A stretch of DNA of 42,447 bases from Schmidtea polychroa. Its lineage: Eukaryota. The notes below the pieces were generated by a model. That model was given only the letters and a program-made list of their open reading frames with translations. It was not told the origin of the DNA and did no database searches. The translations under genes and the position numbers were made by a program. Position 1 is the first letter of the stretch, and the number at the start of each line of letters is the position of its first letter. Below, piece after piece: positions 1-35,325 of this stretch. The stretch is taken from NCBI GenBank assembly GCA_044892525.1, contig CM097886.1, positions 122,326,001-122,368,447 of the forward strand. Reading direction: 5' to 3'.

Positions 1-615
1 GAATTACGAGAAGAGAAACGAGAAAACGAGAGATTAGTGAACAAATATATGGAAGACCGGAAAATGATTAAAGTATTAAAGAAAGAATGCAAAGTGCTAG
101 GAAAAGTAAAGAGAGAAGCAGAAGAGAGAAATGAATGGCTGCAGGAACAACGAACACGAGGAAGAAATTGGGAAAGGATTGCAGCGGAATTATGGCAAGA
201 GAGGGCAAGCTTCAAAGCAGAAGAAGTAATCCAAGACTACTGGAAAACAGAGGCGAAAGAACGCCAAACAACTATAAATAAATTAAATCAACAATTGGAA
301 GAAAAACAAAGAGAAAGTGAAAAAATGAAAAAATGGATCCGCAAATACAAAGAAATCGAGAGACAACAACAACAACGAAACCCTCCACAAGAGAACGAAC
401 AAGATTTCCTACAAATCGAGTTAAAAAGAAATCTCGACAAGAAACGAGAAGAAATAAGCAAACTAAAAATGGAGATAAGACACCTAAAAAGGGAAGCCCG
501 TGAAAAGGATCGGCAATTAGAGATGATGTCGGAATTAAGACACCGGGTCATTGAAGCGGAATCTACCCTGATGAGAAATGCCGAAAATAATCCCAAAGGA
601 GAACCATCTAACTAA
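1..615 (+). CDS. 5'-partial coiled-coil protein of unknown function, probably a retroelement accessory ORF
   Basis: The frame is open from base 1 to TAA at 613-615. E/K/R/Q-rich heptad-like sequence throughout (e.g. INKLNQQLEEKQRESEKMKKW, ISKLKMEIRHLKREAREKDRQL). A-rich sense strand, TE-dense context, no recognisable catalytic motif. Confidence 0.6.
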   Translation, partial: ELREEKRENERLVNKYMEDRKMIKVLKKECKVLGKVKREAEERNEWLQEQRTRGRNWERIAAELWQERASFKAEEVIQDYWKTEAKERQTTINKLNQQLEEKQRESEKMKKWIRKYKEIERQQQQRNPPQENEQDFLQIELKRNLDKKREEISKLKMEIRHLKREAREKDRQLEMMSELRHRVIEAESTLMRNAENNPKGEPSN

Positions 616-654
616 AAGCAATTAAAGCCAGTGTAAATAATATAATAATAATAG

Positions 655-1266
655 ATGTATATTAGTACAATGCGGTATGGAATCGTGATAACGGTAATGG
701 TATTGATAAATCACCTGATGGAGAAACAACAATTAAACGCTCAACTGACAAGCATACGAGATCACCGCAATCGAAATCAAAAAGCCAAACCAGAACCTTG
801 CCAATGCCAATACCCCAGTACAATAAAAACCAACATCCTCCACAGTATCCAGTCAACTCGGTCATATGTTAATAACGTCAGAAGTCTGTGCAAAAATCAC
901 CCCATATGCCGAATGATGGACCGAAAAATACTCGAACAAGTCCAACACTTCGATCAGTTGGAACAACAAATACAACAAGAAGTGTTCGAAAATCCGGCCG
1001 AGACAACAGAAACACCCTCAAATAACAGCGACACCCACTACCTTCTCTACGTAGTGATCGCAGAAACTATCTTGTTATGCCTCATAACCTTCCTAAAAAT
1101 CCTCGAAGTTAAGAAAAAATGTCAGAGCTCGAAATCCAGAGCCACCGTACAAAACCCAGCCGAAATAACCAATGTTATCCAAACCACAAGCTCACCCAGA
1201 TTAAACCATAAAGAATCTCCTCAACCATCGTTCAATCGCCCAATCTACCATAACACCAGTTCGTAA
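655..1266 (+). CDS. Small predicted membrane protein (hydrophobic N-terminus, Cys-containing luminal part, C-terminal TM helix followed by a basic patch)
   Basis: Intact 203-aa ORF starting 39 nt after the previous stop. N-terminal YGIVITVMVLINHL; TM-like YLLYVVIAETILLCLITFLKIL followed by EVKKK; four Cys in the luminal part; NNS sequon. AATAAA about 150 nt downstream (~1418). Confidence 0.6.
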   Translation: MYISTMRYGIVITVMVLINHLMEKQQLNAQLTSIRDHRNRNQKAKPEPCQCQYPSTIKTNILHSIQSTRSYVNNVRSLCKNHPICRMMDRKILEQVQHFDQLEQQIQQEVFENPAETTETPSNNSDTHYLLYVVIAETILLCLITFLKILEVKKKCQSSKSRATVQNPAEITNVIQTTSSPRLNHKESPQPSFNRPIYHNTSS

Positions 1267-1892
1267 TTGTAGCAGCAAACCCCAACCAGAACCATCAGAG
1301 TGACCAAACAATGCCAGAACTGAACTAAAAACACTATGTTGTGAAAAACTTTGTTGTGTATATAAACCATCACCATAAGTGATGCCTGCTTGGTCTTGAT
1401 TTGACCTATATCTTATTAATAAAATTTTATTGATGTTTATAATTTTGTTAATCACTATGTTATCTTTTTATGAATGTGCTTATTTTTTTCTGAGAGAATA
1501 AGAGTAACTCAAGTATGTAATTGCGGGACGCAATTTTGTCGGGTCCCCAAGTGATTTGTTGGGCTGAGTCGAAGGGTATCGGAGAGATTAGGTTAAGCAT
1601 AACGAAACTAAAATTAAAAATAAAATTAAAATAAACAAATCTACGAAACAAAGTAGAAAGGAAACAAGAAAAATAATAATTAGAAAATAAGAATTAAAAC
1701 AAAAAAATATAAAAACACGAAAAATTGAAATAGGACAATAAAATGACGGAAAATGACGTAAAATGCAGTAAATAATAAGGAAATTAAAGAAAATAAATAA
1801 AAAATACAATAAAAATAAGGAAAATAGGAGGAAATAGCTCAAAAACAAGGAAAACAAATTAAAGTAATAAAAATAAGCGGTACTCCATTCTG

Positions 1893-1980
1893 ATTGGTCC
1901 GCATAAATAGAAAACTAATATATAAGCAGACACTAAAATCATAACAATTACCGTTCATCTAACCACTACATTAGGTAAGT
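1893..1980 (+). promoter_or_regulatory. Pol II-type promoter directly after the A-rich arm: ATTGG (reverse CCAAT), TATATAAG, then a GTAAGT splice donor
   Basis: gATTGGt at ~1892-1898, TATATAAGCAG at ~1917-1929, GTAAGT at 1975-1980. The spacing is typical of an LTR promoter. Confidence 0.45.
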
Positions 1981-4051
1981 GTATTTTAATTAACAATGAC
2001 CGTTCATCTAACCACTACATTAGAAACCAAAATTCACAGCGACAGCCACAGATTCACCGAAATCATTTCAAGGACTATTCTAGGAATCCAGGAAAACTCA
2101 ACCTATTCTAGTATTAACCATTTCTGTTCAGAACTTTTCGATTCAGCCTATTTGAAAATTTGGTAAGGGATTTTTTCATTATTTAGGTTTACCATGCAAC
2201 GATCATGTATATTTATGAATTTATAGTAGTCTAAATTTAACAATAATTTTTCTCTTTTCGTTTGATTTGAAGGTTTTACTTAATTAAATGTTTTAGTAAT
2301 TTGGTAATAAACGTTTTATTAGGAATTAAAGGATTTTTTATTATTTGTTGATTTTATGATATTTAAAAATTTTGGAGAAACGTGGTGTTGAGATACTCCA
2401 TGTCATGGTGTGAGGTGCCTTCGGGAGCTCAGCCGGTGGACATGGGGTCTTTTCAATCACGCAGCTGATTCGGGCCGTAATGTGGGGGCTTCCTCACGGG
2501 TCCGTCGCTGAAGGAGTGACTAAATTCTATGAAAAACTCATACGAGGAAGTAGGGTAGGAGAATGAATCGATAAATAGGAGAAATTTTGATATGTTCGCG
2601 CAGTGATTGAGGGTGTCACACTAGCGTATTATAACAGCGTCTGATCAAGTTAAAAATCTTCTTTATCATCCAGTAGATCTAGGCAGGTCTTTCGTTAACA
2701 AAACCGTCCAACCTTGGTAGTGCTATAGTTGCCATAGTTCTCGAATTCGCTAGAAATTTAATCTTGAAGTTTTCAGCTACCGATTTTTGCGAGATCGCTA
2801 TTCCTATCGGCTATATGTCCTCTCAAGGATAAAATTGTATGAAATCGCGTAATTAAATAGGTTTAAGTAATCATTAAAAATAAAAGCGAATAACTCCAAT
2901 CAGTAAAAATGTATTTCTCTAAAAAATAATTCATTAGAATAATGTTTACCCAGTAAAGCATAAAATGTCCACATCCCGTCGAGTGGAAAATCCAGCATTG
3001 GAATAAGTAATAAATCTCCAATTTGACAGCAGTAGCCGGCATACATTGATAGCGATGGAGGGCCACGAGACGAGCTGGTAAATCATATTTGAGGGATCGT
3101 GAATTAATTCCAATATTGATGATGTAGAAATCCGGTTTTTCCAAAATATCCATGAGAGATAGCAGGCAGCATTTGAGGTAGATACATGGTTCGTCAGTGA
3201 TGTAATATGTCATAAGGGAAAATACATCTGCATGCATACACAGGCATAGCATAGAGCATGAAGACATCAGTCAGCGATTATGACTAAGTAGAAGTAGGTG
3301 AGAGAAAATTTTCATGCGCCATGCGCTTTAGAATAATCACAGAGGCTACTCGCAATATGTAGATTATACAGACTGTTAATCACAGGAAATCCAACCTGAC
3401 GCGTCAGCTGAAACATAATTCACTGAAACATACTACTGACAGTCACCCGATTTTCTCACCGATCAGAAATGATAGATAGCGGCCAGACAGACATTTTGGG
3501 TACACGTGGTTAAATTCATTTAAATATTCAACTTTGTCTTAATCATTATTATTTTCTCACAACTAAACAAGTGCAAATTAATTTAACAAACTTTTACTCA
3601 TCACAACAAATAATTGTAGAGCAATTGATAGAGTCTTATTTAGGTTGAATAATTAATTTAAAGATAAATCGCCTATCCATGCATAAGATCTACACATCCA
3701 AATTATTTGTCTTGGGGTAAATCTATAATTTAATTTAAACTCTCTTTAAATGCGAGGTACTGTTTTCAGGTAAATGGATTTAATTGTAATTTCATCAACC
3801 TGTAATTTCCCTTATCCAGGATAATACCTTACTTTCCTTCGGTAAAATCTTGCATGAATGATCCACTCTCGTATGAATAATGACCCCAAGCGTACAAGAT
3901 CTGTAGGGTAACGAAATCTCTTCAGGCTAATAAACTCGTTTTGTCTGTATGATAATCTATGATCGGTATGGTATGAGTGTGACTAGATGATGATGTCTCA
4001 CATTTGCCTTAGTTTGATTTTATTCGCATTTCCTCTTCATAGCTATTCAAG

Positions 4052-4792
4052 ATGTCTTCAAGTACCAACAACATTCTTAAACCTTGCTTTTCTTGCTCGG
4101 ACAAGAATTCAATTATCAGGGATCTACAAGCGCAAATTGGAAAATACAAAAGGAAGATCGATGAGTTGGAGGGGACATGGTTTAGTCCCACGCAAATGAA
4201 AGAGACCCAAAAGAAATTGTATCGAAGCGAGCACTGTCGTGATGCTCTCATTTCCGAAAGTCGGGCACAGAGGAGCCTGATAAAAGAGCAGTCGGAAGCA
4301 CTGCATAAACTATACATACAAGCGGCGACCACTAGAAAAATAGCGAAGATCCCAATTAACGAAGCCAGCAATCTCTTCCCAGCGCACCATGATACTTCCG
4401 TCAAGTTTTCGTCTCCACTCGCGAAGTCTTGCCATGGGTGTGTAGAGTCCGAGCTCTCTCCTAAAGACCCAGAGATTGTATTCACCGGAACCAGTAAGGT
4501 CCAGCCAAATCTCGCGTCCTCATCAACCATACAAACGATCACCTCCTCAAAGCCTAAGCGTCGACAGCTGTCTCGAGCTGAACGCAAACGGAAACAACGG
4601 GAACGGGCATCTGTCAAGCAGTGTACATCGTCAATCATCGCTCCAGTCAGCAATAGTGATCTGACGGTGGTCGTCCCAACAACCGGGATCTCCGGGCGAG
4701 TCATCTCCGCCGCCGGGGCGACGTGGGAGGAAAACGCCGCCGAGTTCTTTAATCTGGACGAGTTACTCGCCGACTCGGAGTGGGAGAAATGA
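4052..4792 (+). CDS. Uncharacterised 'TWFSP' coiled-coil/basic protein, intact copy (246 aa)
   Basis: Intact ATG-to-TGA ORF with higher GC than its flanks. KRKIDELEGTWFSPTQMKE motif, basic SKPKRRQLSRAERKRKQRER segment, acidic/aromatic C-terminus. Homologous to the ORFs at 12362-13024 and 20067-20507. AATAAA at 4928-4933. Confidence 0.75.
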   Translation: MSSSTNNILKPCFSCSDKNSIIRDLQAQIGKYKRKIDELEGTWFSPTQMKETQKKLYRSEHCRDALISESRAQRSLIKEQSEALHKLYIQAATTRKIAKIPINEASNLFPAHHDTSVKFSSPLAKSCHGCVESELSPKDPEIVFTGTSKVQPNLASSSTIQTITSSKPKRRQLSRAERKRKQRERASVKQCTSSIIAPVSNSDLTVVVPTTGISGRVISAAGATWEENAAEFFNLDELLADSEWEK

Positions 4793-4952
4793 GGATTTCC
4801 CCGGAAAATGGCCTCCTTCTCCGTAGAGGATTGAACTTCTTCTGTTGTCGTTTTCTACCTTGGTGTTATTCAGTTCGTGTAAAATTCCTTGTATAAATTC
4901 TCTAGGTGTTTATATAGTAAATTTAATAATAAAAATTTTTCGTTTATGTATG

Positions 4953-5563
4953 TGTTATCTTGTGTGTTGAACTTAGAGAATAATATGAACTTGCAAATGG
5001 CACTGAGAGTTGCAGAGAATAAGGAGTATTGGTCAATTGGTAATTCCAGCTAGAAATCTTGCGATGGGCGACAAAAGAAAATGACGTAAGTCCTTCTATC
5101 GGCAGTCAGGGTTAGGAAGTCGAGGCCTCAGTAGGGAGTAGTCCGAAGGAGATGGCTCACCTGCCTACTGGCGTCTCGCCGGCATAGCACAGTTCCAACG
5201 TGAAGCGATTCACGGGTGCTATGTTGGAGGGTAGATTATGTACGGGTCCTGCTCGGCAATGACCAGAATCAAGACGAGCGTAATCGATATGGGGCATTCA
5301 TCCTCTGGACTGAAAGCGGTAATGAAGGGGGTCATCCGGGTAGTCACCCGCCAACAGAAACAGTATTTTAAAAATATCATGGATATTAATGAATAAGGGA
5401 GTAAATAAAAATATAGATTATTACTCAATTGTATTAAACTGAATTTAGATTTAACACGTTCACCCCGGCGCGGATCACCGGTGGCCCGCACTAACCTGTC
5501 CCATCGGGCGGCGTGTACCACCGGTGGGACGTATTTGATTGTGTTGTTAGACGGTACGTAACA
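4953..5563. mobile_element. LTR-like segment (family 2; TGTTATC...TACGTAACA) nested in copy 1
   Basis: TGTTA/TAACA inverted termini. The right end gttgttagacggtacgtaaca resembles gttgttaaggttacgtaaca at 21675-21694. No matching TSD (tatg/ttaa), so the boundaries are tentative. Confidence 0.45.
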
Positions 5564-5619
5564 TTAAATATTTAGATCTTTAACACTGACTGCCGAAACA
5601 GAAGATAGTGCGCAATTTT

Positions 5620-6152
5620 TTATGAATATACCAAGCATTCGCGAGGGAAGTTACGAATATTAATTGTATTACTACTTTTTGATACCATTTTTCGAGTCCA
5701 TTTCAAAAATTTTACACTGCTACGATTTTCGAAACTCATAATTTCACTACGTTTTTGTTTTTGTTTTGCCTGCGGTGGAAGGAATTTTTTGTTTATTTTT
5801 TTACAGTACCACAAATAAATGTATTTTTCTCTAAAAGTTCTTCACCCAAAGTGACACTTGTATAATAATTATTAGTAAATAATATGCGGCCCTCAAATAA
5901 TAAGCCATTTAGTAATCTCATTACTACATCGTGGGAATATGATTTTTCAATGATCGTTACATTTTTTCCGGTATAAATTTCGATATTATAAGTGTAACCT
6001 TCAGGCAAACATAATTTGTATAACTTTATGTCATACTTATGTCGCTTGCCTTGGATGTATTGACGAAAACCTTGACGTCCTCTCCATTGAACCATACTTT
6101 TATCGATAACGATATTTTTGCCAGGTTTAATAGCACTTTTGAAAGTATCCAC
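5620..6152 (-). pseudogene. piggyBac-family transposase fragment (DDE_Tnp_1_7 / PGBD-like)
   Basis: IVIDKSMVQWRGRQGFRQYIQGKRHKYDIKLYKLC...GYTYNIEIYTG...NNYYTSVTLGEELL...CGT matches the piggyBac IDESM..F.GR...QY...K..KYG and DN.YTS..L motifs. Catalytic residues are altered and the frame is broken. Confidence 0.9.
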
Positions 6153-8386: not shown

Positions 8387-9851
8387 TGTTGGGTCGCTTT
8401 GTGGTGTGTTATATTTAAATGTAGTAGGGGTATTTATGGATTTCGAATCGACTCCTTCCATAACGCCTTCATGACTATTGTCTTTAAACCATCTGTGTAC
8501 CCATGGAGACGACCATGTTGGTGCTGTACACAATGGCTAAAAATCCATGAACAGATGAGTTCTACTTATAAAACTACTTATTATATTTTCATTTTCGGGT
8601 TCTGGACTGCCGATTGGATGTCTTATGTCATTGTTAATTAGCTATTTATTTCTTAGATTATTGTTGTTGGTTCATGTAATTATGGTCCTCATTATGAGAT
8701 GTTTTCTAATGCTATCGTCCAAAATTTTACACGGGGATCCACCTTTATTTCCCAGTTAATAAATGTTGCAATATTCAAATTATTCTTCAAAAAATATTTC
8801 AGCAGGAATCTGCCTATATTTCTAATCCTGACCTATCTGATCTCATAACTACTCGAGGATTCTAGAATATTATCCCAAAAACTAAACCTATCTACTTGCA
8901 TTGGTCTTACTTCCTATATTTCTTACTCATTACAGTAAATAAAATGGTATCAGCGATCGACTCGGCGGAGAAGCCTCCGAACTGTACCGAATCATCTGAG
9001 TGTCTTGCACCTACGTCTATCTACCCATAAGATCAGAAGCCTGATCTTTGATTGATGGTGAGATCCATCTCCACCGTAACTATTATTCAAATCATAAAAA
9101 TTAAAAACGAACAATAAAAAGAAATTAACTAAAACTGAATTAAATACAAAGATTTATAAACTTAGAACATTACATTACCAAATCCAATTCAAGCTTACCG
9201 CAATGGCATAAACCGAAAAACTGAGAGCTACAGTTGAATTACATACAGTTGAATTACGTTATACACACGTATATGAGTGTGTGCAATTTTTTAATTTAAT
9301 TTAATTAATCAATTTATTTAATTTTTCTTAATTTTAATTATTTAATTTTATTATTTTATCCATAGAAATGTTTAGTTTCCATTCTTAAATTTATTTCTTT
9401 ATTTTATTTCATTCAATTTTTTAAATAAATTTTTCTGTTCCTTCTCTTAAAGTATGCACACATTGCCATAGCTCCTTCGTGTGTAAATACGAGCCATAAC
9501 ATCCCCAAATAGTTCGATTATGGTCCTTCGTATATAAATACGACCAATAATCCTATTAAAATTTCTTCATTTAATTAATTATTTTATTATTAATTATTAT
9601 TTTATTTATTATTATTTAATTTTCTAGTATGCAGATTTTCAGAATGCATTATTTTTCTCATAACTGTGTTGATTGCAACTTCTTGCGTTTCGTGATTTTA
9701 TTATACGTGTTTTATTTATCCTCCATGTGTTGTGTACTTTATTTTGTATTATTGGTGTATAATCATAAATTTTAATTCAATTTTGTGCGGTTTTTATGCT
9801 GTATTTTTGGCTCATTAAAAGAAACTCTCAATCTTTGGTTCTAGTTCAACA
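8387..9851 (-). mobile_element. Family-1 solo-LTR-like element (copy 2, 1465 bp, no ORF)
   Basis: Left end TGTTGGGTCGC. The block 8387-8630 aligns by eye with 11730-11965. Right end TTCTAGTTCAACA resembles TTCTAGCCCAACA at 26039, preceded by a T-rich arm. Flanks TTAC/ATAC (3 of 4 match). Confidence 0.65.
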
Positions 9852-12361
9852 ATACAAAACTAAATTTTTATTTACATTAACTTAGAAAACAAAATTAAAC
9901 TATAACAATTATTTAAATGGGCTTATCGTTGAGTCTCAAAAAATATGTTAAAAGTGTTAGTAGTATAACGCATTTTGGTATCTGTCAGGGTGGCTTTATA
10001 TATCCAAATCAGATTTTCTCTCGAATGGTCAGGTAGGAGCATAATTCCTTCTCTCTCATTGGTTAATACTATAGTTTAATTTTACTATTTTACCTGGTTT
10101 CAACCTGCTCAGGCCAACGAACACAAGAAAATATTCTGCTTAGAAAAGTGACGGGATGAACTGATCACAGAGAAACTTTTATCGGAGAGTAATTGTTTAT
10201 TTTTATTAATCTTAACGTTTATTTATTTTTCAAAAAGTGATCTTAAATGATTGAAGACAACTAGAAAAATTTTCTCTTTCTCTAAGTTGCTTAACTTGTA
10301 TTTTGGAAAAACAACTTTGCGAAAAATGTAAATTGTCATTTTAAACACAAGATAAACAAAAGAAACAATAAATTTGATTAAAAAGTGAAAAAAAAACATT
10401 ATTTCCATAAGAAGGTAAAGAAGTAACCTCAAATTTGTGTTATTTATCAAGTGAAAATTTGCATGTTTTAAGTTAGTTTTATTCGAATAATTGTTAATAA
10501 TAATATAATCAAGTTTATTTTTTATTAGGATGGATACATTTTTGTTAAATAAATCAGTTAAAGCACCAAATTCAGTGACCAAAAAAATCGAAATGAAAAG
10601 AAAATATGCTGAAGACTTCATCGAATTTGGATTCATTGCGATAGAGAAAAAGGGACAGGAGTTTCCCTTTTGTCTGGTGTATAATGAGACATTGTCAAAT
10701 GCGTCAATGATTCCCAACAAATTGATTAGACACAAGGATACTAAGCATCCAGAGCTCTTTTAAGAATCAAAACAATAATTTGATATTCGGCGAGCACAAA
10801 GCGAAAAACAAGCGTTTAAGATGAAAATTTTCTACAAGATTCCTGAAAAGGCTCAGATTGCAAGCTTCCAAGTAACATATCTACTCGTGAAAAAAAGAAA
10901 ACCACACACAGAAGCTGAAAGTATTATTGCTGCTGCAGTTTCGATTATTTTTAGCACAATCCTGGGATGTGAAGCTGCTGAGAAAGTGAAGAATGTACCA
11001 TTGTCAGCAAACACAATTTCAAGAAGGATTCAAGATCTATCAAAGGACATTGAATCTCAAATCATCGAGAATTTTCAGAGCTCGGAGGAGGAATTTTCCA
11101 AATTGTGGTCGCTGCAAGCTGACGAAACCACCGACATCAGCGGAAAAGCACAGCTCATTACATTCATCATATTCGTTCACGGTACAGAAGTAATGAACCA
11201 ATATTTGTTTTGCCAGGAGTTGATTGAAACGACCACAGGAAGAGATATTTTCAACTTTATCGATTACAATGTGAAGAACTATCAACTTCAACAGCAGAAA
11301 TGCGTCGGAGCTTGTACAGATGACGCTCCTCGTCTTGTTAGCCGTTCAGTCACCATTCAGAAGCTTTAGTTTCAAAATCAATTCCTTCGCAGCTCCTTAT
11401 TGTCATTAATCAAGTCGTCTCGATTGTCAACATTATCAAGTCAAAGCCTCTGAACTCCAGAATTTTCGGCCTTTTTTGCGATGCGATGGATTCGATTTCA
11501 AAACTCTACTCTACAACACAGAAGCTCGATGGCTGTCCAAAGGAAAAGTTCTTGAGCGTGTTGTTTACCTCAAAACTGAAATAATTTCATTTCTTGAAGG
11601 TGAGGATATCACATTCGATTTTGATTTTCGAGACAGTGACTGGTTGTTGAAGGTATCATTTCTTATTGATCTTTTCAACAGACTCAATGTTCTTAATAAG
11701 AGTCTTCAGGGATTAGCTGAAAATATTATTGTTGGGCGCTTAAGGTTGTGTCCAACTTTTGGATGTCAGGGGTAGTTGTAGGTGCACAGGTAGACTCCTT
11801 CCTAAACGCCAATGATGATTGTTGTCTTTACAACACCTGTGTACCCATGGCAAGGGCCATCTTGGTGCTGTGCACAATGGCTGGGAATTCATGAGCAGGT
11901 CCTTTGATAAAACTACTCATAATATTCTAAATTCGGGTTCAGGAATGCCGATAGAAGGGCTTACATCTGTATCGACTACATATAACAAGCTACACTCGAA
12001 ACCTCTGGTCCAGTGATCTCTTTCGATCTCTTTCGATCTCTTTCTCATTGAAACTCACATCACCGTGTCACCATGATTTTACCTCTCGGAAGACAGGTCA
12101 CCGAACAATATCATTTTATTTTTAAGGAATAGAAATTGGTAAATTACATAGGACATTGAGATTACATCAAGACATCATAAACATAAAGAGGGAATTTATC
12201 ACTCATAAGTTCAAAGTAAATTACGATCAAATGTGTCGAAGCGTGTCAGAACACTGAATGAGTCTATGTGGTTGGGGATTTTCATTGCTTGACATCGAAC
12301 TGAGGTATTGAGATATTACCGAGTTCCCTCACACGCCTATTTCGAGTTGGTTGGCTAAAAC

Positions 12362-13024
12362 TCACTGCCCTGGGCTTCCAGCATTAGTGTCGACATCAAT
12401 CTCCAGTTGCAGATCTATCACCCACGGGGTGTTTGTTGCCGGTATGATCCTGTAAGGAGGTGGATCTGTTGCTGCCCGAGCTGGATATGGTCTGGGCTTG
12501 GTGGATAGCGGGGCTGCAAATAGTGCGGCTTCGACAGTAGCTAGTTCGTCCCTTTTCCGCTTGGATCGTTCCGCGCGTGTGAGACGCTTTCGTTTCGGTC
12601 GGACAACCGGGATAGAAGTCGATGACAAGGCTGTAGGAGCTGGTGGGGGAGTGACAGGTACTAGTGCCTTAGCTGGCATCGTACTCGTCTCCACATATAC
12701 GACATTCGGCTGCGTGGTTAAGGCAGGAAGACTTGGTCAGGCCAATAATGAATCGGGAAAATGTTGTTCCTGTCGGTAATCGGATATTCGGAGACACGCT
12801 TTTGTAATTCATGTTCGGAGTAAATTTATGTAGCGTTTCCGACTGGGCTTTGATGGTGAGTCGTGGCTTTGATTTTCTTCTAGCAAACTATCTCGGCAAT
12901 GTTCCAAGCGTAAGATTTTTCTATTGGCTTCCTTCATCTGTGGCGGGGCGAACCACGTCCCTTCCATCAGATCAATGCGTTTCTTTAGGTTTCCGTTTTC
13001 GGTGCGTAGCTGTCTCGTCTCCAT
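12362..13024 (-). pseudogene. Frameshifted 'TWFSP' family ORF
   Basis: KKRIDLMEGTWFAPPQMKE...LEHCRDSLLEE. Alternative frames give RLTIKAQSETLHK and YSEHELQKRVSEYPITDRNNIFPIHY, matching the 4052 ORF (RSLIKEQSEALHKLY...PINEASNLFPAH). Then RPKRKRLTRAERSKRKR. Confidence 0.8.
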
Positions 13025-13078
13025 GGTCTTAGGCCAGTTTTAGGGAGGTTTGACTCGGACATATCTATAAAAGGAAAG

Positions 13079-13091
13079 ATTTATAGCTGAA
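13079..13091 (-). promoter_or_regulatory. TATA motif TTCAGCTATAAAT upstream of the TWFSP ORF
   Basis: 13-mer identical to 20580-20592, 55 nt upstream of the ATG at 13024. Confidence 0.6.
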
Positions 13092-15105
13092 TTCGTCACA
13101 TAACAGATACTAGGTCGTCGACCAAAGTATACCAGATGGTCTATTAGGATTTATTTATACATCGGAGTCGTTACGATAAAGATTGAGGGTCGCCGAAGAC
13201 ATCTATCGTCGGTCAAGTATGACAGTTAGATTTTTAGAGAAAAATATATACTCTGTTCATGAAGTCATTTCAAAAAATATATACTTGCCCCATCCCCCTT
13301 GATCGTTTAACCTTGTGCATTTGATAGTCATTATCTAGTTTCAATTTCTGACCTCTCAATGCCCTATTCTCGTAGCTAAATCACTCTATTTAAACGAAGG
13401 TTCCTTATGGGTTAAATGGATAATTTGATCGATGGATGACTGAAATATTTTATCCCACATTTTTACAAGTTTTAATCAATTTTACCACATCGATGTCAAC
13501 GCACTGGCTACTTCAAATTATTCTAGTGGTTTATTATACCCCGCAAGCAAAACATTCGCATTTCCCATCATAAATAATTCATTCTATATGAAATTAATAT
13601 CACGCTAGTGGGGTTTGAAATGTTTATATTTGTTATACAATCAATGCCTATTCATGCTTCCTCATTTCTGTTCCACGACAATCTACGCGTAATGATGTTC
13701 CGTAGTATCAATACTGATGGATTTCAGTCAGAAATGTTTACATTATGATATGTGAATTGCGTTTCCGGTCTCGCTAATGCCATGCTAAAATTTACTGTTG
13801 TTTACATTTTCCTATTGAATCGAAGTGCAAAGATTACGATAGACGAGGGCGATATTTCCGGCCTTGCATACGATTTACTGATTATAATGAACCACGACAC
13901 CCTGTGCCGTTTAGTTTTACTTTTGAAGGTTTTTAGTTTACTTTGATTTCTAATTGTTTTCTAAACTCATTCTATTTTATCTGTCTTCGTTTTCAATTTA
14001 ATTACTACTTTTACTCTACTTTATTTTAATTATTTTAAATTAATTGCTATCCTTAATCTATTTTATTTATAATTGTTTTAAATTATTATTATTTATTAAT
14101 ATTTTTTATTACCTTGTTGTTTTTAATTTACTTTTCTTAGTTGGTGTCCTCATCTTAAAAAAGAACCAAGGTGCTATGTTTAACTAAGAGAAAAAAAACT
14201 GATTATTGGAACTTTTACTGTTCCTGGCCCAACATTATGGCGGTAACATTAAAGCTTCTTTCATTTAAAGAAAAACTTCACTTGTTCTTCAGAAAAATCA
14301 AGGAAAAAAGCTTTGATCTTCTCCATCGTTGATAAATTCGCCAATAAGGATGAAATTTCTGAGTTTGCTCTCCAAACCATGGAAATGCTTTTAAAAGCAC
14401 TCGGCAATTATTTCCCCTCCTTAAACGTCAACCTTTATCAGTGGATTTTGAATCCATTTGGAACAAACGAATGTCTTGAATTTTCTACGAAAGAAGAAAA
14501 ACAACTTATTGGTTTAAAAAACGACATGGTCAATAAAATTAATTTTGAACAAAAAGGACTGGAAGAATTTTGGATTTCTCTAGGCAAGGATTATCCCGAG
14601 TTGAGCATCAAAGCGTTAAAATTATTAATTCCGTTTTCTACTTATATGAACTTGGATTTTCGGCACTGGTTGAAATCAAATCAAAGAAACGTGAAAGATT
14701 GCGGACAGTTGATGAAGAAATCCGAGTTAGTTTGTCGTCGCTCTTGCCCGGAACATCAAGCACATCCATCACATTGACGTTTGAGAAGGAACAAATAAAT
14801 AATAATGTGTTAATTTTTGTTTCTCAAACCCGCAAGTTAAACAGCATTAAACTTTCATAAAATTTGATGCAAAATCTTATATCGAAAATATTTGTCAGGG
14901 GTGTCGCGAATTTTTTTTAAGTGAATTGGCTGTTGCTATTGAAAGAAGTTTGGAGAACACTGAGCTTTTTTATTTTATTTAAATCTATTAAATTATTCCA
15001 AATTTATCACCAGAATTAAATTATTATTATTATCAGTCATCAAAATCAAATATTTCATTATAACTGGTCACAAACTCACTCTACATTTCACTGTCAGTTG
15101 GTTAT

Positions 15106-16378
15106 TTATGATTGCTCGTGAATCAATTGGTACAGTGAGTACTTGGTATCCAGCATTTCTGTCATATACTGGCTTCGCCCATGCCGAATGATTAGCGCTG
15201 TCAGCATATTTCTCACTGTTTTACTCCGTAAAATATTTCCGTTTTTAGTATCGACCGCATCAATTGTCACTGCATAACCAAATGGCCATCCCATTTTATC
15301 ATTAAATTCTCCATATAACAAATGAAAAAACATAAATTTCACTTGACTTATTAATTATGCTCAAGCACATTTTGTAACCGGGTCGCCCTGAGTAAAATGG
15401 CTCGCTATAGATCTGATAATCATATTTATGTGATAAATTTATTATTTTACATTCAAAAAATCCAAAATTTTCAATTTCCAAATTTCCTTTAATTTCCGAA
15501 ATTTTGCTCAATTCATCCTGAACATAAATTCCACCTTCAAATATTTCAATTATAAAATCAATTTCACTTTTATATTCTCTTTCTGCTCATAATTTTGTTA
15601 TAATTCATCAATTTGCAGCCTCATCTACTCGGCATTTGGAAAATGATATCGAATCAATATTAAAATAAAAATCAAACTTCATTTATTTATTCCACATTTG
15701 CTTTATTCTCAGCTCTCAATGATCAATTATCATTCTTCTCTGCCATCATTTCTTCATTCAATACCTCTATTTCTTTACTGTTGTCCATTTCGCACATTTT
15801 CTGCTACCATCGCAAATTTCAAAATATTTCAATAAATCAATTTACTTGTTGTATAGCTAATTGTAACTTCATTGATTCCATTTCCTTTCGTAAATTATTG
15901 ATGAGATCAACCATCAGGTTGTTATGGTAGCAATGGTCTTCATTAAGATGATCTTTCATTTCGTCAATCATCATTTTATTCATTCCACACCCAATTCCAA
16001 AAAATGGACAGCTAATAGCCTTTTTGGTACATTTTCTCATGTGATATTCTATCATGCCCAATTTATCTTTGAATTGGCAATTATACAATGGACATTTTAC
16101 TACTGTTTCCGAAATTCTAAAATTAGCTGGATTATCTTCACAAATGTCTTCTTTCAAATTTAAAGTTTGCACGTGACAAAATTTTGCTGCTCCTGGACAG
16201 AATTTATCGATCCCATCAAATAATCTTTGATGTAATCGGAACAAAAGCGACAACCACAAGGTGCGTTACAGGCGTTTTTTATTAAACATTTGCAAATTCT
16301 GCATATTAAATCATTACTGATTTCATTGTCAACTTCAAATTTATTCTCATTCATAATTTTCCAAATACTTGTAAACAT
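15106..16378 (-). pseudogene. TRAF-like gene with frameshifts and stops (RING, TRAF Zn finger, coiled coil, MATH)
   Basis: CRICKCLIKNACNAPCGCRFC RING; KCPLYNC...HMRKC...SCPFFGIGC...HLNEDH Zn finger; MATH fragments SEPFYSGRPGYKMCL and LLYGEFNDKMGWPF lie in different frames. Could be a pseudogene or assembly error. Confidence 0.85.
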
Positions 16379-16769
16379 TTTCTAGATTAATTAAAATAAT
16401 TATTGATTGATAAAAATAGAAATATTTAAAGTACTCTTAAAAAAATCGGAGAATTAGTTATTATATGTTATAAAAATAATAATTAATTTAATTTATTATT
16501 TTCAAGTATAATCAATTTATATTTAGAAATAGATAAACAAATCAATATCTGAAAAATGAAAAAAACACTCTATGTTAAATAAGAAAAATATTGATTCATA
16601 TTCGAAATGAAGTAAAATAATTCAAGAATTGGAAAAGCGATATTTCTGTTATTGATATGGAACGGATTAAAGTTCTAAATTGTCCTAATTTACCAGTTTA
16701 TTATAAAAGTCATATTTAAAGCTATTTATAAATAATTGGTTCAGCAATTATGCCACTGGAAGGAATATG

Positions 16770-17891
16770 TTAATCACTGGACACTGAGCACTTAATAATA
16801 ATAATATCATCTTTACAGAGAGTTGCATTTCCGATCAGATCAGTGAGAATGATGAACTTCGACGTTCCGAATCCTCTATTTTCATTTGTTGTTGGTTGAT
16901 TGTAGATAAACTTCATATTTTCTATGGTCGAAGCAAACCGATACTTCATGAAACAATGGCTACTTCCAGTATCTTGATTGATCAACGCGATTGTAATTTC
17001 CTTTTTCATTGGCCATCTCAGGCAATTGTCATGAGGTCCCTTCATCAGACAGAATACAACAGAGAGATGGGTATTTTTCCCATCCCCAAAACCACTGGGA
17101 AATACTGTTAACCGCATTTTGTATCCAACGGGGTCTGTGAAAAACGGTTCGCTTTTGATTTCGGTTTTTATCCAATATTGAGCAGATGTTTTCTTTTCGG
17201 AAAATTTATCAATTTTCCATATGAATTTTGTTTCTGAATCCGGATTTTTAAGTTGAAGTTCTTTAGAAAAGTCATTTTTACTAATGTGACTAGCGTCCTG
17301 ATAATGGTGATGACTGATAATAAACTCTTTCTCCCTTTCCTGCAAAACATTCATCGCATTCAATAATCTTGCGTTTTCATTTTTCAAGTTTTCGATGTCC
17401 TTTTTCATCAGTCGCATTTCGTTATTTATATTTTCCTTCCATCCGTAGGACGGGATATGCTTCAAGCTCACAAATCCACTGTCGGATCTTGATTTTAAAG
17501 AGTCTAAAATACTATTTGTCGAGGAATCGATATTGAAACAATATTGTAAATGCATACTCATACTCTTTAATTTCCCGCGATACTCACAAGTTGAGTTTGG
17601 GCACTTTACTTCAAGCTTTAATATGATATCATTTATGTAAAAGTCCATCTCGATATTTCTATTCAAATTAATCCTTTCTCGAGTACATTCATCTTGTTCG
17701 CCAATGCAATATTGACCGTCGAATTCTTTGATACAATCATAGCAATATCTGCATCCACATGGAGGGAAACTCGCTTTAATCAACACATTTCTACATTTGA
17801 TACATGCGAGATAGTGAAATACCTTTAAATCTATTTCAAAATCATTCTCTTTCATCAGATGCCAGACATTTTCGTATTTTGAATATGCCAT
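16770..17891 (-). CDS. TNF receptor-associated factor (TRAF)-like protein, single exon, 373 aa
   Basis: RING-like CIKC...PPCGCRYCYDC, Zn finger KCPNSTC...HLQYC, coiled coil, and a complete MATH domain (FIWKIDKFS...SEPFFTDPVGYKMRL...HLSVVFCLMKGPHDNCLRWP...CKDDIIIIKC). Orthology to a numbered TRAF cannot be assigned by eye. Confidence 0.92.
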   Translation of the reverse strand: MAYSKYENVWHLMKENDFEIDLKVFHYLACIKCRNVLIKASFPPCGCRYCYDCIKEFDGQYCIGEQDECTRERINLNRNIEMDFYINDIILKLEVKCPNSTCEYRGKLKSMSMHLQYCFNIDSSTNSILDSLKSRSDSGFVSLKHIPSYGWKENINNEMRLMKKDIENLKNENARLLNAMNVLQEREKEFIISHHHYQDASHISKNDFSKELQLKNPDSETKFIWKIDKFSEKKTSAQYWIKTEIKSEPFFTDPVGYKMRLTVFPSGFGDGKNTHLSVVFCLMKGPHDNCLRWPMKKEITIALINQDTGSSHCFMKYRFASTIENMKFIYNQPTTNENRGFGTSKFIILTDLIGNATLCKDDIIIIKCSVSSD

Positions 17892-18598: not shown

Positions 18599-18862
18599 TT
18601 GTTTTGTAACGAAAATTTGTTGCCAAAGGTGTTCTATCAAGGTGATGACTTAGAAAAATTCATTAAAAGATGCGAGATTTATTTCTATGCTAAAGGCATC
18701 AATAAACAAGAACAGGAAAGATTGACTGCATGTATAATCGACGAGGATCTACTGGAGAAATATGCAAAGACAGTTAGAAAAGCAGAAGGATTTCAAGCCA
18801 GGTCACGAATGGCATTTGATTATTATAGAAGATTCATCAGTGAGTATACAAAGAAAGTGTAG
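18599..18862 (+). pseudogene. Ty3/Gypsy gag N-terminal fragment
   Basis: PKVFYQGDDLEKFIKRCEIYF resembles Gypsy gag N-termini. Lies on the same strand just upstream of integrase. Confidence 0.55.
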
Positions 18863-18976
18863 TAGAATGTTACATTTTTATCATAATTATGAGTCAAAAC
18901 AGAATCTCAATTAGGTTTTGTTTTTACTCCCGTTTTGGCGCCCTCAAAGTCATGAAATAAAGAGTCTTAAAAACTA

Positions 18977-19012
18977 TATAGCGATAATTTACTATAGTAA
19001 ATTATCGCTATA
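18977..19012. repeat. Perfect 36-bp palindrome (copy B)
   Basis: TATAGCGATAATTTACTA|TAGTAAATTATCGCTATA. Confidence 0.95.
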
Positions 19013-19119
19013 GTAAAAATGACAAATCGAAATAAAATAGAAAATAAATATTTGAAAATAGAAAGAAAACGTAAATTTGAAAAGAAGAAAATAAGAATCA
19101 ACAGCAGATAAATCCTAGC

Positions 19120-19692
19120 AAGAATTATATGAAAGATTATATGAAAGATAGATATATTAGGAAAGACCTGTGCCGTCAGATTCAGGAAACTATTCAAAGT
19201 TGTGAGACTTGTCAAAAACCAAGGCTATAACAATTACAACGAAGGAACCAGTAAAAAACTAGAATCAACTGAAATGTTCGAAATTATATTCGTGGATATA
19301 TGTGGACCAATGCAAGAAACAAAAGGATGTAAGAAATATATATTGGGTATAATAGACCAGTATAGTAAGTATCAAGTCTTGACAGCTATAACAAGACAAG
19401 ACGAGGAAACAATAAAGAAAACGATTTTAGAAAAACGGATTTTAAGATTTGGGTGTCCAAAGGAGATAAGAGTTGATTGTGGGAAGGCGTTTGAATTAGG
19501 ACTGATGAGAGAATTTACAAAGAAACTTGATATTAAGTTATGTTTTTCGAGTCCATAGCATCACCAAACAAATGGACAGATAGAAAGGCAATTCAGGACA
19601 ATACGAGAGCTGATAAATACTACTTTACGAGGCAGAATGAAGACGGATTTGGCAGAGATACTACCAGAAGTCTAATTTACATTAAATGCAAC
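19120..19692 (+). pseudogene. Ty3/Gypsy integrase, Zn-binding and rve core part (interrupted)
   Basis: IQETIQSCETCQK; IIFVDICGP...YILGIIDQYSKY...FGCPKEIRVDCGKAF...SP*HHQTNGQIERQFRTIRE. Frameshift near 19258 and in-frame stops. No RT/RNase H between gag and integrase. Confidence 0.92.
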
Positions 19693-20066
19693 TGGTGGGT
19701 TACTGGTAGTTAATTAATTATGCTCTTATGCTGTTACCAGCGTAACCCAGGATACAACCTTATTTTCCTCTTGGTACCCGTTGAGCAATCAACGTTGGTA
19801 CTGTACCAAGGGGTTGAGTACTCGCAAAAAGTGAGCGCGTCAAGCACTGTAATTGTCGAGCACTCTATGGGTTCACGGACGCCGATAGAAGGCACGTGTC
19901 CGATTTATTTCGGTCTCTCATCGAGATCGTTTTTCCAAGCGCCTTCCCGCCAACCATCCTGTTTCAGACAACCGCAAAGTTCAATCACATACTCATTAGA
20001 TAACAAGAATCATTTATTAAGCCACCACTATATTACAAAGATTGTTTACGCACTCTCGAACGTCTC

Positions 20067-20507
20067 TCAGGATCGTGGATTGGCTTCAGTCTCCTTCAAT
20101 TTCTCCTGTTCGGCTAACCAGGGCCTTTTCAATTTGTCGCGGGTATTCCGCCCTAGCCGTTTGCGTTTCGGCTTGCTTGCCTGGGCTGGTGGGTATATCT
20201 GGGCCAACTCCACGGAAAGTGGACGAATCTGCTCGCAAAGGGTGTCCTGGACGACTCTTTCGTTCAATTTACTCTCGAGCGAGCGCACTTGTAGCTTCAG
20301 CGCTCGGATCTCGAGTTGATCTTGCTCCGCCTGGGTCTGGAGTTGCGAGATGCGCGTGGTTTGTTTCTTCATCTCAGCCGGACTGAACCACGTACTTTCG
20401 AGTTCCCGGCATTTGATCTTGAACTTCTCGACCCGACTTCGGAGGTCTTCGGCTTGCTGCTGGGCCTGTTCACGGTCCTTTCGTAGGTTTTCGAGGAATG
20501 TGTACAC
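20067..20507 (-). CDS. Divergent 'TWFSP' family ORF (start uncertain)
   Basis: KIKCRELESTWFSPAEMKK and SKPKRKRLGRNTRDKLKR. The ORF track starts at GTG; the nearest ATG (20547) is 40 nt upstream and out of frame, so the 5' end may be frameshifted. AATAAA at 20018-20013. Confidence 0.7.
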   Translation of the reverse strand: MYTFLENLRKDREQAQQQAEDLRSRVEKFKIKCRELESTWFSPAEMKKQTTRISQLQTQAEQDQLEIRALKLQVRSLESKLNERVVQDTLCEQIRPLSVELAQIYPPAQASKPKRKRLGRNTRDKLKRPWLAEQEKLKETEANPRS

Positions 20508-20579
20508 TGAATGGAAACAATAATAAAATTCCCTCGCTCGTTGCCATGCGCGTAAAGGTGATTCACTTAGTGGTGTAAA

Positions 20580-20592
20580 ATTTATAGCTGAA
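20580..20592 (-). promoter_or_regulatory. TATA motif TTCAGCTATAAAT upstream of the TWFSP ORF
   Basis: Identical to 13079-13091. Confidence 0.6.
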
Positions 20593-20816
20593 AGGTGAGT
20601 GAGGTCCCCCCGATCCTGGAGACACCCATAAAATATAACCGCAGAGAAATTAATTTGCTATATGAGGAAGACACATGAACAAATATAATATTAATAAGTT
20701 TAATAAAGTAACATCCTACAAATTGTCGTATCAATTATTAAAGGAGTCAAACACAATTACAACAACATTATGTCCGATTGATCATATAGTTCATTCAAGT
20801 CATCACAGTCGTGGGA

Positions 20817-21185
20817 TTAGGCAGGGTTCTTCCGGGGCCTTCCCCGTTTCCTCGGAGGTGCCTCGGCCTCTTCTAATTCTTCCAGGGACACCCCTTCTCT
20901 TTCGGCTCTGATTTGTAGATCGATCTTCCTGAGCCGGGTCTGGGCAGCTTCCACATCCCAGGCCGCCTGATCTCGGGCCTCTTGCAAACGGTCATTCTCC
21001 GGTTCCACCTTCACCCATGCCTGGGCATCGGGCTCTGGGCCGGTCCGGATAATCCGATTGGAACAGTCCAGGTCCCGCCCCTGATACCATCGATGAATAT
21101 GGTGCCAGATGTACCGCGTGCGAAGGCGGGTGATTGTCCATTGCTCGTCCTCTTCGCTGCTGGGGTTATCGTTTGGTGGTGCCAT
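20817..21185 (-). CDS. 122-aa protein with a short coiled coil and a C-terminal AT-hook
   Basis: Intact ATG-to-stop, GC-rich ORF. LQEARDQAAWDVEAAQTRLRKIDLQIRAE, then PRKRGRPRK (canonical R-G-R-P AT-hook core). Confidence 0.7.
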   Translation of the reverse strand: MAPPNDNPSSEEDEQWTITRLRTRYIWHHIHRWYQGRDLDCSNRIIRTGPEPDAQAWVKVEPENDRLQEARDQAAWDVEAAQTRLRKIDLQIRAEREGVSLEELEEAEAPPRKRGRPRKNPA

Positions 21186-21294
21186 GCCTGGAATGTATAC
21201 GTTAATACCCGTTTAACTCACGTCACTTATCAATGGTCGTCATAATAAAATACATCGAATTAACTCACATATCAATGACTAAGTTTATTACGAT

Positions 21295-21694
21295 TGTTAT
21301 AACTACTTTTATCAAAGAAAAATAAGTTTTGTTTATAGGTTTTACCAATTTAATTTTTAACTACTTAAAATTAAATAACTTTTATCAAAAAAAAAATAAA
21401 GTTTGTGTATAGGTTTTACTAATTTAATTTTTAACTACTTAAAATTAAATAACTTTTATCAAAAAAAAAATAAAGTTTGTGTATAGGTTTTACCAATTTA
21501 ATTTTTAACTACTTAAAATTAACTAACCTTTATCCAAAGAAAATAAGTTTTGTTTATAAGTTTTACCAATTTAATTTTACCTACTTAAAATTAAATAACT
21601 TTTATAAAAAAAAATAACACTTACAATTATTATCATCACCCTGATTTAAGGCCTTTTGTTTGATCACGGTAATCGTTGTTAAGGTTACGTAACA
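21295..21694 (-). mobile_element. Family-2 LTR (TGTTACGTAACC...TATAACA on the minus strand), probably a 3' LTR
   Basis: On the minus strand it is preceded by the purine-rich AGAAATGTGGGAGT (PPT-like, 21695-21708). Terminus resembles 5543-5563. Partner LTR and TSD not found. Confidence 0.45.
21305..21620. repeat. Tandem repeat, ~73-74 bp unit, ~4.3 copies
   Basis: Unit ttttatcaaa...ataggttttaccaatttaatttttaactacttaaaattaaataac recurs at about 21307, 21380, 21454, 21528 and 21600. Confidence 0.9.
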
Positions 21695-34029: not shown

Positions 34030-35119
34030 TTGAAACAAAGGACTGAATTCAGTGTCTTATTTGACAGCAAACAATTGCAGTAGCAAAAGGGTTCAATCTT
34101 AGTCACCATTATAACACACTTCATGGCAACAAATTCCATGGAAAATTAAGAGAAGAGAAAATTATTCAGTTCAAATCATCATTTAAAAAACAAACAAGTT
34201 TGTTCTCCAAGTACAATAAAGTCAGTGAAGATTCTGTCAAAGCAAGCTATATTCTCTGAAATGATAGCAAAAGCATCCAAACCTTTTAAAGAAGGACTTT
34301 TTGTCAAAGAATGCATGGTACACGCCTGTGAAATAATGTGCCCTGAAAAGAAGAAAGTGTTTGAGAGAATAAGTCTATCTGCTAATACAGTTTCTGCTCG
34401 AATTTCTGAGTTGACAGATGACACACAACTGACACAGCCCAATGTGCAGTCTTCATTAGAGGTGTTGACAAACATTTGATGATTACTGAGGAATTGCTAG
34501 AATTGATACCTTTGAAGGGCACAACCATAGGAAGAGATATTTTTCAAAAGCTTGAAAAGTGTACTGCTAAAGCTGAGCTACCTTGGTCAAAATTAGTTAA
34601 TCTTGCAACAGATGGTGCTCCAGCAATGCTTTCAGAAAAAGTCGGAGTTGTTCGTCTACTTAAAAACAAAAATCATATTCATATCTCCAACAAGAAAGAT
34701 TTCCAAGGTTGCATTCTCAGGCAGTAAAGATTATTACAATGTTTGGAAGCACTTTTTTTTCATTGATGAAATTCAACAAATCTTCAATAAAAACAAAGTT
34801 AAGTGACGAACATTTACAAGCCACACTAAGACTGGCAACATCTAAAAAGATTTTTCCTAATATTGATGTTATTGTGGTGGCTAAACATTGCCAACTAAGT
34901 AGCCAGAAATAAAAATAATATATTTGACGCTTTGTTTGTCTTTAAATAATTTTGTGTTACATTTTTATGTTCATAATAATGTTTTTTTCCTATTTCTAAT
35001 AAATTGCAATTATGATACATTTTCGAGTATTTATTTTCTAAAAAAAATATGTTGCGGCCCGCCGGCTCATGATACTAGTCTAATGCGGCCCGCAGGCCAG
35101 TTTGAGTTTGAGACCCCTG
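34030..35119 (+). mobile_element. Internally deleted hAT (Charlie/Buster, GTF2IRD2-like) transposon remnant
   Basis: KASYILSEMIAKASKPFKEGLFVKECM...ISLSANTVSARI; LIPLKGTTIGRDIF; LATDGAPAM; MFGSTFFSLMKFNKS...LSDEHLQATLRLAT. Right TIR tttgagacccctg (35107-35119) preceded by GCGGCCCG subterminal repeats. Left TIR not seen. Confidence 0.88.
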
Positions 35120-35325
35120 ATATACATCGACATTTTCCGAATAAGGTGGAGAATCTTCAGTATCTTCATTAGGTTGCTCACAGCACAAGAAAAGGAAAAC
35201 ACAAGAAGAAGAGCATACAACATGTACATCTAGTAACGTTGAAATTTACATTTATATAGGTAAATTTAGTAATGTTAATGTCGAAATTGATAAATTTCGA
35301 ATTTTAAATTGTAAATGAAAACCAA

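Follow-up and report, generated by a model that had tools for sequence, protein, structure and literature searches.

What kind of gene is the TWFSP reading frame, which recurs in diverged copies within 42,447 nucleotides (nt) of the Schmidtea polychroa genome (GenBank assembly GCA_044892525.1, contig CM097886.1, positions 122,326,001 to 122,368,447, forward strand), and what carries it? We refer to this whole stretch as the window. It is AT-rich eukaryotic sequence (GC ~30%) crowded with transposon remnants, and its three TWFSP open reading frames (ORFs) occupy three GC-rich islands of 45-60% GC. We found that the TWFSP ORFs are genuine copies of an uncharacterised protein gene and have been under selection. 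Our preferred reading, to which we give an even chance, is that the gene belongs to a family of mobile repeats with units of 1-4 kb built like Gypsy-type long terminal repeats (LTRs), and that its product is an oligomerising RNA-binding accessory protein.

The copies of the ORF in the window are as follows.

4052..4792, + strand: TWFSP ORF of copy c1, 246 amino acids (aa), intact, with no break
12362..13024, - strand: TWFSP ORF of copy c2, one frame with two in-frame stops and no frameshift
20067..20507, - strand: TWFSP ORF of copy c3, short subfamily, 146 codons, ATG absent in frame before the conserved core
~10092-10172, + strand: decayed TWFSP ORF fragment c5

Copy c1 consists of a helix, a GTWFSP turn and a second helix, followed by an FPAHH motif, a basic segment and an acidic-hydrophobic tail. 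Copy c2 retains GTWFAP and the basic segment and has a PPPY motif. The shortness of c3 is normal for the short subfamily; its closest database relative, P0001, has 157 aa. The fragment c5 spans the part from TWF..P..Q.. to ..RD.LI.E, is AT-rich with an internal stop, and was matched by two independent queries (E = 0.001-0.015 within the window).

In tblastn comparisons within the window, c1 matched c2 at E = 9e-17 (32% identity over 210 aa) and c3 at E = 1e-5; the c1-c3 match reached E = 4e-8 in BLASTP. With blastn, DNA similarity between the copies was below detection. We then considered where in the codon the changes fall. Aligned codons of c1 and c2 were 53% identical, with identities of 0.63, 0.67 and 0.29 at codon positions 1, 2 and 3; synonymous sites were saturated (proportion of synonymous differences, pS, 0.88), and the non-synonymous divergence (dN) was 0.50. 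Other copy pairs were alike, and the short subfamily showed the same pattern when c3 was compared with its metagenome relative (0.48, 0.62 and 0.38). The position-specific identities and the saturated synonymous sites show, therefore, that the copies diverged under purifying selection at the protein level, and this selection appears to have operated while the diverged lineages were active. A first-pass annotation of the window had proposed three homologous ORFs at these places, with low nucleotide similarity and selection on the protein, and was right on all three counts, as it was in the tail it quoted for c1. The TWF and basic motifs that it described are common to all three copies, but the two regular expressions it gave for them are exact for c1 and only approximate for c2 and c3.

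To find relatives, we built a profile from the window copies and ran it against 1.84 billion representative proteins with a cut-off of E <= 1e-3. This search returned 17 matches, ~15 of which are clear relatives (UniParc entries), and they fall into two types: short and c3-like (P0001, P0005), or longer and c1/c2-like. Counted from GTW, an ESRxQR motif follows at +28 and [IVF]PxxH at +68, 40 residues further, with identical spacing in c1 and nine relatives. The arginine-rich block is present in all complete members, and PPPY occurs in c2 and three relatives and is absent from c1 and c3. Nearly every relative is embedded in a gene model in which it is fused to an unrelated host domain: neurotransmitter transporter, subtilase, CH domain, mitochondrial L21, glycine-cleavage P protein, actin, CRAL-TRIO, tyrosine phosphatase, ankyrin or hAT transposase. 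This is the picture expected of dispersed insertions absorbed by gene prediction. The relative fused to the hAT transposase, P0008, compares with the hAT gene that is split by one of the units described below. No match came from a word-indexed protein search with c1, and the same search with an 11-sequence profile returned its own inputs only. The sole DNA relative found was L001, a 638-bp public metagenome contig (ERZ2271643) of ~52% GC that holds the complete short-type ORF P0001, with a TATA-like motif ~120 nt upstream of it.

Next, we looked at what surrounds the ORFs. In 42 kb there are just three exact copies of the 12-mer CCTTCTATCGGC, and every one lies on the coding strand of a TWFSP ORF, 175-404 nt past its stop codon. 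The 12-mer marks the start of a conserved non-coding stretch of ~170-280 nt, the 3' module. The modules and the candidate transcription signals are listed here.

5080..5356, + strand: 3' module of c1, resembling the unique 5' region (U5) of an LTR; CCTTCTATCGGC at 5092-5103, hairpin at ~5180-5226
11730..11972, - strand: 3' module of c2; 12-mer at 11947-11958, hairpin at ~11835-11879
19732..19905, - strand: 3' module of c3; 12-mer at 19881-19892, hairpin at ~19768-19812
8440-8632, - strand: 3' module of c4, 77% identical to that of c2, with no ORF
5581..5612, - strand: c6, inverted partial copy of the start of the 3' module with a TCGGCAGTCAG core; weak call
4928..4933, + strand: AATAAA of c1, then a GT-rich stretch (GT fraction 0.67 over 60 nt)
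12120, - strand: start of the AATAAA of c2
20018, - strand: start of the AATAAA of c3
13079-13089, - strand: TATA-like 11-mer CAGCTATAAAT of c2
20580-20590, - strand: TATA-like 11-mer CAGCTATAAAT of c3

A composite pattern of the module matched exactly four places in the window, those of c1 to c4, and nhmmer recovered the same four. The partial copy c6, which lies tail to tail with unit c1, was not detected by nhmmer; it has 16 nt that are 94% complementary to 5099-5114. A GC-rich stretch at 5460-5530, of unassigned nature, lies beside it. Between units, DNA conservation is confined to the 3' module, and a six-frame comparison of the flanks limited protein-level homology to the ORF, so that wider homology was rejected. 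Rfam gave no match at its gathering thresholds, and the 3' region of c1 gave chance-level matches only.

Each module contains a hairpin. When the four copies were aligned, 92.6% of the cells in the stem were paired, compared with 32-43% when the partner column was slid; compensatory changes occurred in 9 of 17 pairs, the inner stem was different in all four copies, and none of 500 shuffles reached the observed values. It is on the sense strand that the stem has G-U pairs. Between the ORF stop and the module, all three ORFs have an AATAAA and a GT-rich stretch (GT fraction 0.60-0.67). On the other side of the ORF, CAGCTATAAAT stands 65-83 nt before the start in c2 and c3, that is, in two of the three.

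The 3' modules belong to larger units, which we list together with the transposon genes that bear on their insertion.

1557..5356, + strand: unit c1, candidate full extent; 5' TGTTGGG followed by A-rich repeats, 3' ...GCCAACA; 5' bound tentative
11730..14234, - strand: unit c2, 2,505 bp; ends TGTTGGGC...GCCCAACA
19732..21694, - strand: unit c3, ~1.96 kb; ends TGTTACG...GGTAACA; bounds approximate
8387..9451, - strand: unit c4, ~1.07 kb, without a TWFSP ORF; 3' end ...GACCCAACA (CCCAACA), degenerate 5' end and A-rich region
21314..21616, - strand: A/T-rich 74-bp tandem repeats, four copies, in the 5' part of unit c3, which resembles the unique 3' region (U3) of an LTR
13938-14109, - strand: 43-bp tandem repeats at the corresponding place in unit c2
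10530-11729 and 14235-14777, + strand: decayed hAT transposase gene, split by unit c2
34225-36378, + strand: second hAT-type transposase copy, decayed
18599-19713, + strand: Gypsy-type remnant with a gag-like ORF and an rve integrase core (Pfam, 1.5e-12)

Unit c2 gives the clearest picture. Its ends, TGTTGGG...CCCAACA, form an exact 8-bp inverted repeat, and they are flanked by a 4-bp duplication, TTAT, at 11726-11729 and 14235-14238. The hAT frame ends in ...AENI to the left of the unit and resumes with MAVTLKLLSFKEKL to the right, in phase if the duplication is counted once; the hAT pieces on either side were compared apart, and the second hAT copy does not span the insertion site. Unit c2 is thus an insertion into a hAT gene. 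Unit c3 sits within a decayed Gypsy-type integrase gene, with integrase-like frames on both flanks; the frame apparently resumes to the right of 21695 (+), beyond the unit. Stops and frameshifts mark the decay of the Gypsy-type remnant, and several of both are seen in the hAT gene and in the integrase remnant around c3. The ends of c3 fit the plan TGTTRNR...YNYAACA at six of seven positions. The 5' end of unit c1 was placed by the exact 8-mer TGTTGGGC at 1557 (+), the same as the 5' end of c2, and A-rich repeats follow it as they do in c2 and c4. By their common 3' module and end motifs, the three ORF carriers are separate insertions of one unit family. The first-pass annotation had spoken of three separate elements, which is correct for the insertions and incorrect if unrelated elements were meant.

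Two further features lie inside these units. A short GC-rich island at 2390-2520 (+) falls within the candidate 5' part of unit c1 and is possibly a nested fragment. Unit c3 contains, upstream of its TWFSP ORF, a GC-rich (0.58) ORF of 122 aa at 20817-21185 (-) with an AT-hook-like basic C-terminus; it has no family match, and units c1 and c2 have no counterpart of it.

We asked which known kind of sequence has such an anatomy. Retroviral and Gypsy-type LTRs follow a published common plan of TGTTRNR...YNYAACA ends, a TATA, an AATAAA and a GT-rich stretch, with the 3' part better conserved (PMC3601003), and Gypsy LTRs typically have TGTNR ends and 4-bp duplications (PMC2836005). The units in the window have short inverted ends, a target duplication in the 4-6 bp range (c2), and, in the same sense as the ORF, a TATA-like motif in two of three and an AATAAA with a GT-rich stretch in three of three. 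The ORF lies between the TATA-like motif and the AATAAA and would thus be inside the LTR-like unit, in line with the retroelement accessory-gene context proposed at first pass. The unit could serve as its own small transcription unit, with those two signals as putative transcript bounds. If the TATA-like motif is a promoter, the ORF would belong to the repeated (R) part of the LTR, the unit would be a small gene, and the hairpin would fall in U5. In retroviruses, U5 holds structures with roles in reverse transcription and packaging. All four units of the window resemble solo copies, derived from different, long-diverged subfamilies.

Several observations weigh against this LTR reading. We found no pair of units in direct orientation around a gag-pol in the window, the four units all looking solo, and no primer-binding-site-like or polypurine sequence abutting any unit. 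It would be very unusual for an R or U3 region to hold a complete ORF of 740 nt. No TATA-like motif is present upstream of c1, and the 5' bound of unit c1 depends on a single exact 8-mer. Target-site duplications were not recognisable for c1, c3 and c4, that of c2 being the clear one. The hairpin covariation comes from four sequences and is suggestive, short of proof. Searches of metagenome and viral contigs by protein profile and by a module-specific DNA pattern gave no related loci. Finally, the function proposed below is deduced from composition and predicted helices, with no homologue of known function in the Pfam, PDB or fold searches.

The solo state of the units bears directly on an alternative, which we consider unlikely without dismissing it: the unit would be a complete non-autonomous mobile element and not an LTR, moved in trans by an integrase-type DDE enzyme (Ginger-like or the integrase of a retroelement), with TWFSP as its sole gene. 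All four window units are single, c2 and c3 have simply inserted into other transposons, and a selected ORF suits an element that needs a protein of its own. Ginger DNA transposons, moreover, have TGTNR ends and 4-bp duplications in common with Gypsy LTRs (PMC2836005), as do the ends of the TWFSP units. The inverted ends here, however, are just 6-8 bp long, whereas the inverted repeats of Ginger1 and Ginger2 measure 40-270 bp; the specific target and the integrase-like transposase of these transposons were likewise not seen in the TWFSP units. The duplicated TTAT differs from the CCGG/CCGT of Ginger1, and the site mismatches the RTATAY target of Ginger2. A same-sense TATA and AATAAA with a GT-rich stretch, together with an RNA-type hairpin on the sense strand, make up the motif set of an LTR, and the unit contains no transposase.

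To address what the protein might do, we returned to c1 and its relatives. Pfam searches at cut-off found no domain in the TWFSP protein. Two profiles searched against PDB sequences gave compositional or fusion-partner matches only, and Foldseek against PDB folds and viral predicted folds gave only generic helical hairpins or meaningless superpositions; the view taken at first pass, that no known domain is present, agrees with these results. AlphaFold2 was run on c1 with 4 and with 15 sequences, and the models agree. They predict helices at 15-41 and 46-99 with a predicted local distance difference test score (pLDDT) > 90, separated by a four-residue turn at GTWF, and a basic helix at 175-193 (pLDDT ~87); the remainder is predicted to be disordered, except for short low-confidence helices in the acidic tail. 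The model and the sequence of c1 support a helical, oligomerisation-type N-terminal region, a basic segment and, in c1, an acidic-hydrophobic tail, in line with the coiled coil, the basic segment and the acidic-aromatic tail of the first-pass annotation.

The product would be a protein of ~150-250 aa that oligomerises through its conserved N-terminal two-helix region, and its arginine-rich helix may bind nucleic acid, most likely the element's own RNA. We consider oligomerisation by the two-helix core and RNA binding by the arginine-rich helix the most likely activities, judging from the predicted structure. In one of 11 members, an arginine-rich stretch matched the arginine-rich part of Pfam REV (PF00424) at 19.1 bits, below the cut-off of 22; no member reached the REV gathering cut-off, and c1 itself did not match. 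This sub-threshold match, the one lead to a named family, is a pointer to RNA binding and not to transcriptional activation. The PPPY motif of several subfamilies could recruit NEDD4-type WW-domain proteins. In retroviral Gag, a PPxY late domain goes with a capsid fold; here PPPY was seen in c2 and three relatives and not in c1 or c3, and no capsid-like fold was predicted. Taken together, the predicted parts would suit an accessory factor that binds RNA or forms ribonucleoprotein particles in the manner of Rev/Rex, delta antigen or the ORF1p of long interspersed nuclear elements (LINEs).

The likeness to Rev/Rex lies in a small protein with oligomerising helices and an arginine-rich helix, and in the structured RNA element within the same terminal unit as TWFSP. 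The order of the parts differs, the REV match is sub-threshold, and RNA binding by TWFSP is putative. Hepatitis delta antigen and LINE-1 ORF1p presumably resemble TWFSP in being small, partly disordered RNA-coating proteins in which an N-terminal coiled coil precedes basic segments. They differ in that TWFSP gave no match in Pfam, PDB or fold searches and in that its context has integrase-type ends.

The first-pass annotation had gone in another direction, likening the protein to Tas/Bel1, Tat and HBZ and suggesting a nuclear trans-activator or anti-silencing factor, which would act on the unit's own promoter as such factors do in retroviruses. Nuclear localisation and trans-activation are guesses, and we regard this role as improbable. 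The basic segment of c1 is usable as a nuclear localisation signal, the predicted helices would oligomerise, the C-terminal tail is acidic-hydrophobic, and the gene adjoins the unit's putative promoter. Nevertheless, no sequence or fold match links TWFSP to those proteins or to other known trans-activators in Pfam, PDB sequences, PDB folds or viral predicted folds. The acidic tail is not conserved across the family, since the short subfamily stops soon after the basic block and relatives have PPPY-containing tails instead, and in its basic block the protein has an RNA-binding type of arginine-rich motif.

If the LTR reading is taken to its full extent, each LTR would be a self-contained gene, in which a promoter and a poly(A) signal bracket the ORF and an R-like part of ~1 kb is coding. 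Solo LTRs would then keep making an arginine-rich, oligomeric RNA-binding factor of a new class that recognises the adjacent U5-like hairpin. We put this forward as a speculative extension that is probably wrong in this strong form. A precedent for a complete ORF inside an LTR, and so for a gene in every LTR copy, is sag of mouse mammary tumour virus (PMC2119085). The two differ in several ways: sag is a type II membrane glycoprotein encoded in U3 (PMC2119085), whereas TWFSP, a helical, arginine-rich protein that is for the most part disordered, lacks a membrane segment and is encoded between a TATA-like motif and an AATAAA. There is no sequence relation, and the LTR status of the units is one that we infer here. 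Lineage-specific extra genes of Gypsy-like elements, selected alongside gag-pol, are also known as the ORF3 types of rotifers (PMC5408684) and the accessory ORFs of planarian Burro elements (PMC6431247). Those genes are internal, and in most of them a domain can be recognised (env-like, GDSL esterase, exonuclease, MATH/TRAF), in contrast to TWFSP, which has no known domain and stands in a terminal unit. That the units are themselves the LTRs of Burro elements is a lead from the literature only (PMC6431247).

The hairpin and the coiled coil also raise a very different origin, an ORF1-only ("half-LINE") non-LTR retrotransposon whose 3' stem-loop in the untranslated region would be recognised by a LINE reverse transcriptase. 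A coiled coil with a basic region, a conserved and covarying 3' hairpin and the existence of the shorter, ORF-less unit c4 would all fit such an element. We hold it to be very unlikely, given the defined TGTTRNR...AACA ends with a 4-bp duplication, the absence of a poly(A) or microsatellite tail, the position of AATAAA upstream of the hairpin and not after it, and the failure to find an RNA-recognition motif or a C-terminal ORF1 domain; c4, in addition, retains a 5' end and an A-rich region, so that it is internally shorter and not 5'-truncated. Least credible is a multi-copy host gene family with no link to mobile DNA, for although c1 is an intact, GC-rich coding sequence with its own poly(A) signal, c2 and c3 break other transposon genes (c2 with a target duplication), a non-coding 3' module and end motifs are common to the copies, and the relatives are dispersed in many unrelated gene models.

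The remainder of the window holds further reading frames and remnants, in addition to the hAT and Gypsy-type genes listed above.

5793-6152, - strand: piggyBac-type transposase fragment (Pfam DDE_Tnp_1_7, 1.2e-26)
16770-17891, - strand: intact single-exon ORF of 373 aa with RING, TRAF zinc-finger and MATH domains (Pfam MATH, 2e-28)
15837-17891, - strand: region of the preceding ORF and of a second TRAF zinc-finger ORF directly downstream of it
1-612, + strand: coiled-coil reading frame, open at the left edge of the window
1-1266, + strand: region of the preceding frame and of a 203-aa ORF after it with a transmembrane-like segment
27839-28149: run of 311 N bases

The closest database relative of the RING/TRAF/MATH ORF is 61% identical to it, and the ORF is a candidate host gene or element cargo. 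The giant Gypsy-like Burro elements of planarians carry MATH/TRAF domains internally or as accessory ORFs (PMC6431247). At the left edge of the window, the strand of the coiled-coil frame is A-rich, with an AT skew of 0.47. Neither this frame nor the 203-aa ORF had a family or structure match, and we found nothing in support of an env-like reading of the region. A search for tRNAs found none in the window, and exact look-ups of seven window ORFs found none of the seven in the protein collection.

What the TWFSP family means depends on how far the LTR reading holds. Extra genes of LTR elements are normally internal, and very few examples are known of a conserved gene in a terminal repeat. If the reading is true, every solo LTR left behind by recombination would be a potential source of an element protein, which would change how "dead" LTRs in genomes of this kind are read. 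The family represents an unannotated protein fold with a strictly conserved helical core of 70 residues. In at least one related genome the family is so widespread that many host gene models are contaminated with it, and its recognition would clean up annotation. On the same reading, an arginine-rich protein and a covarying hairpin within one unit offer a concrete protein-RNA pair for descriptive study.

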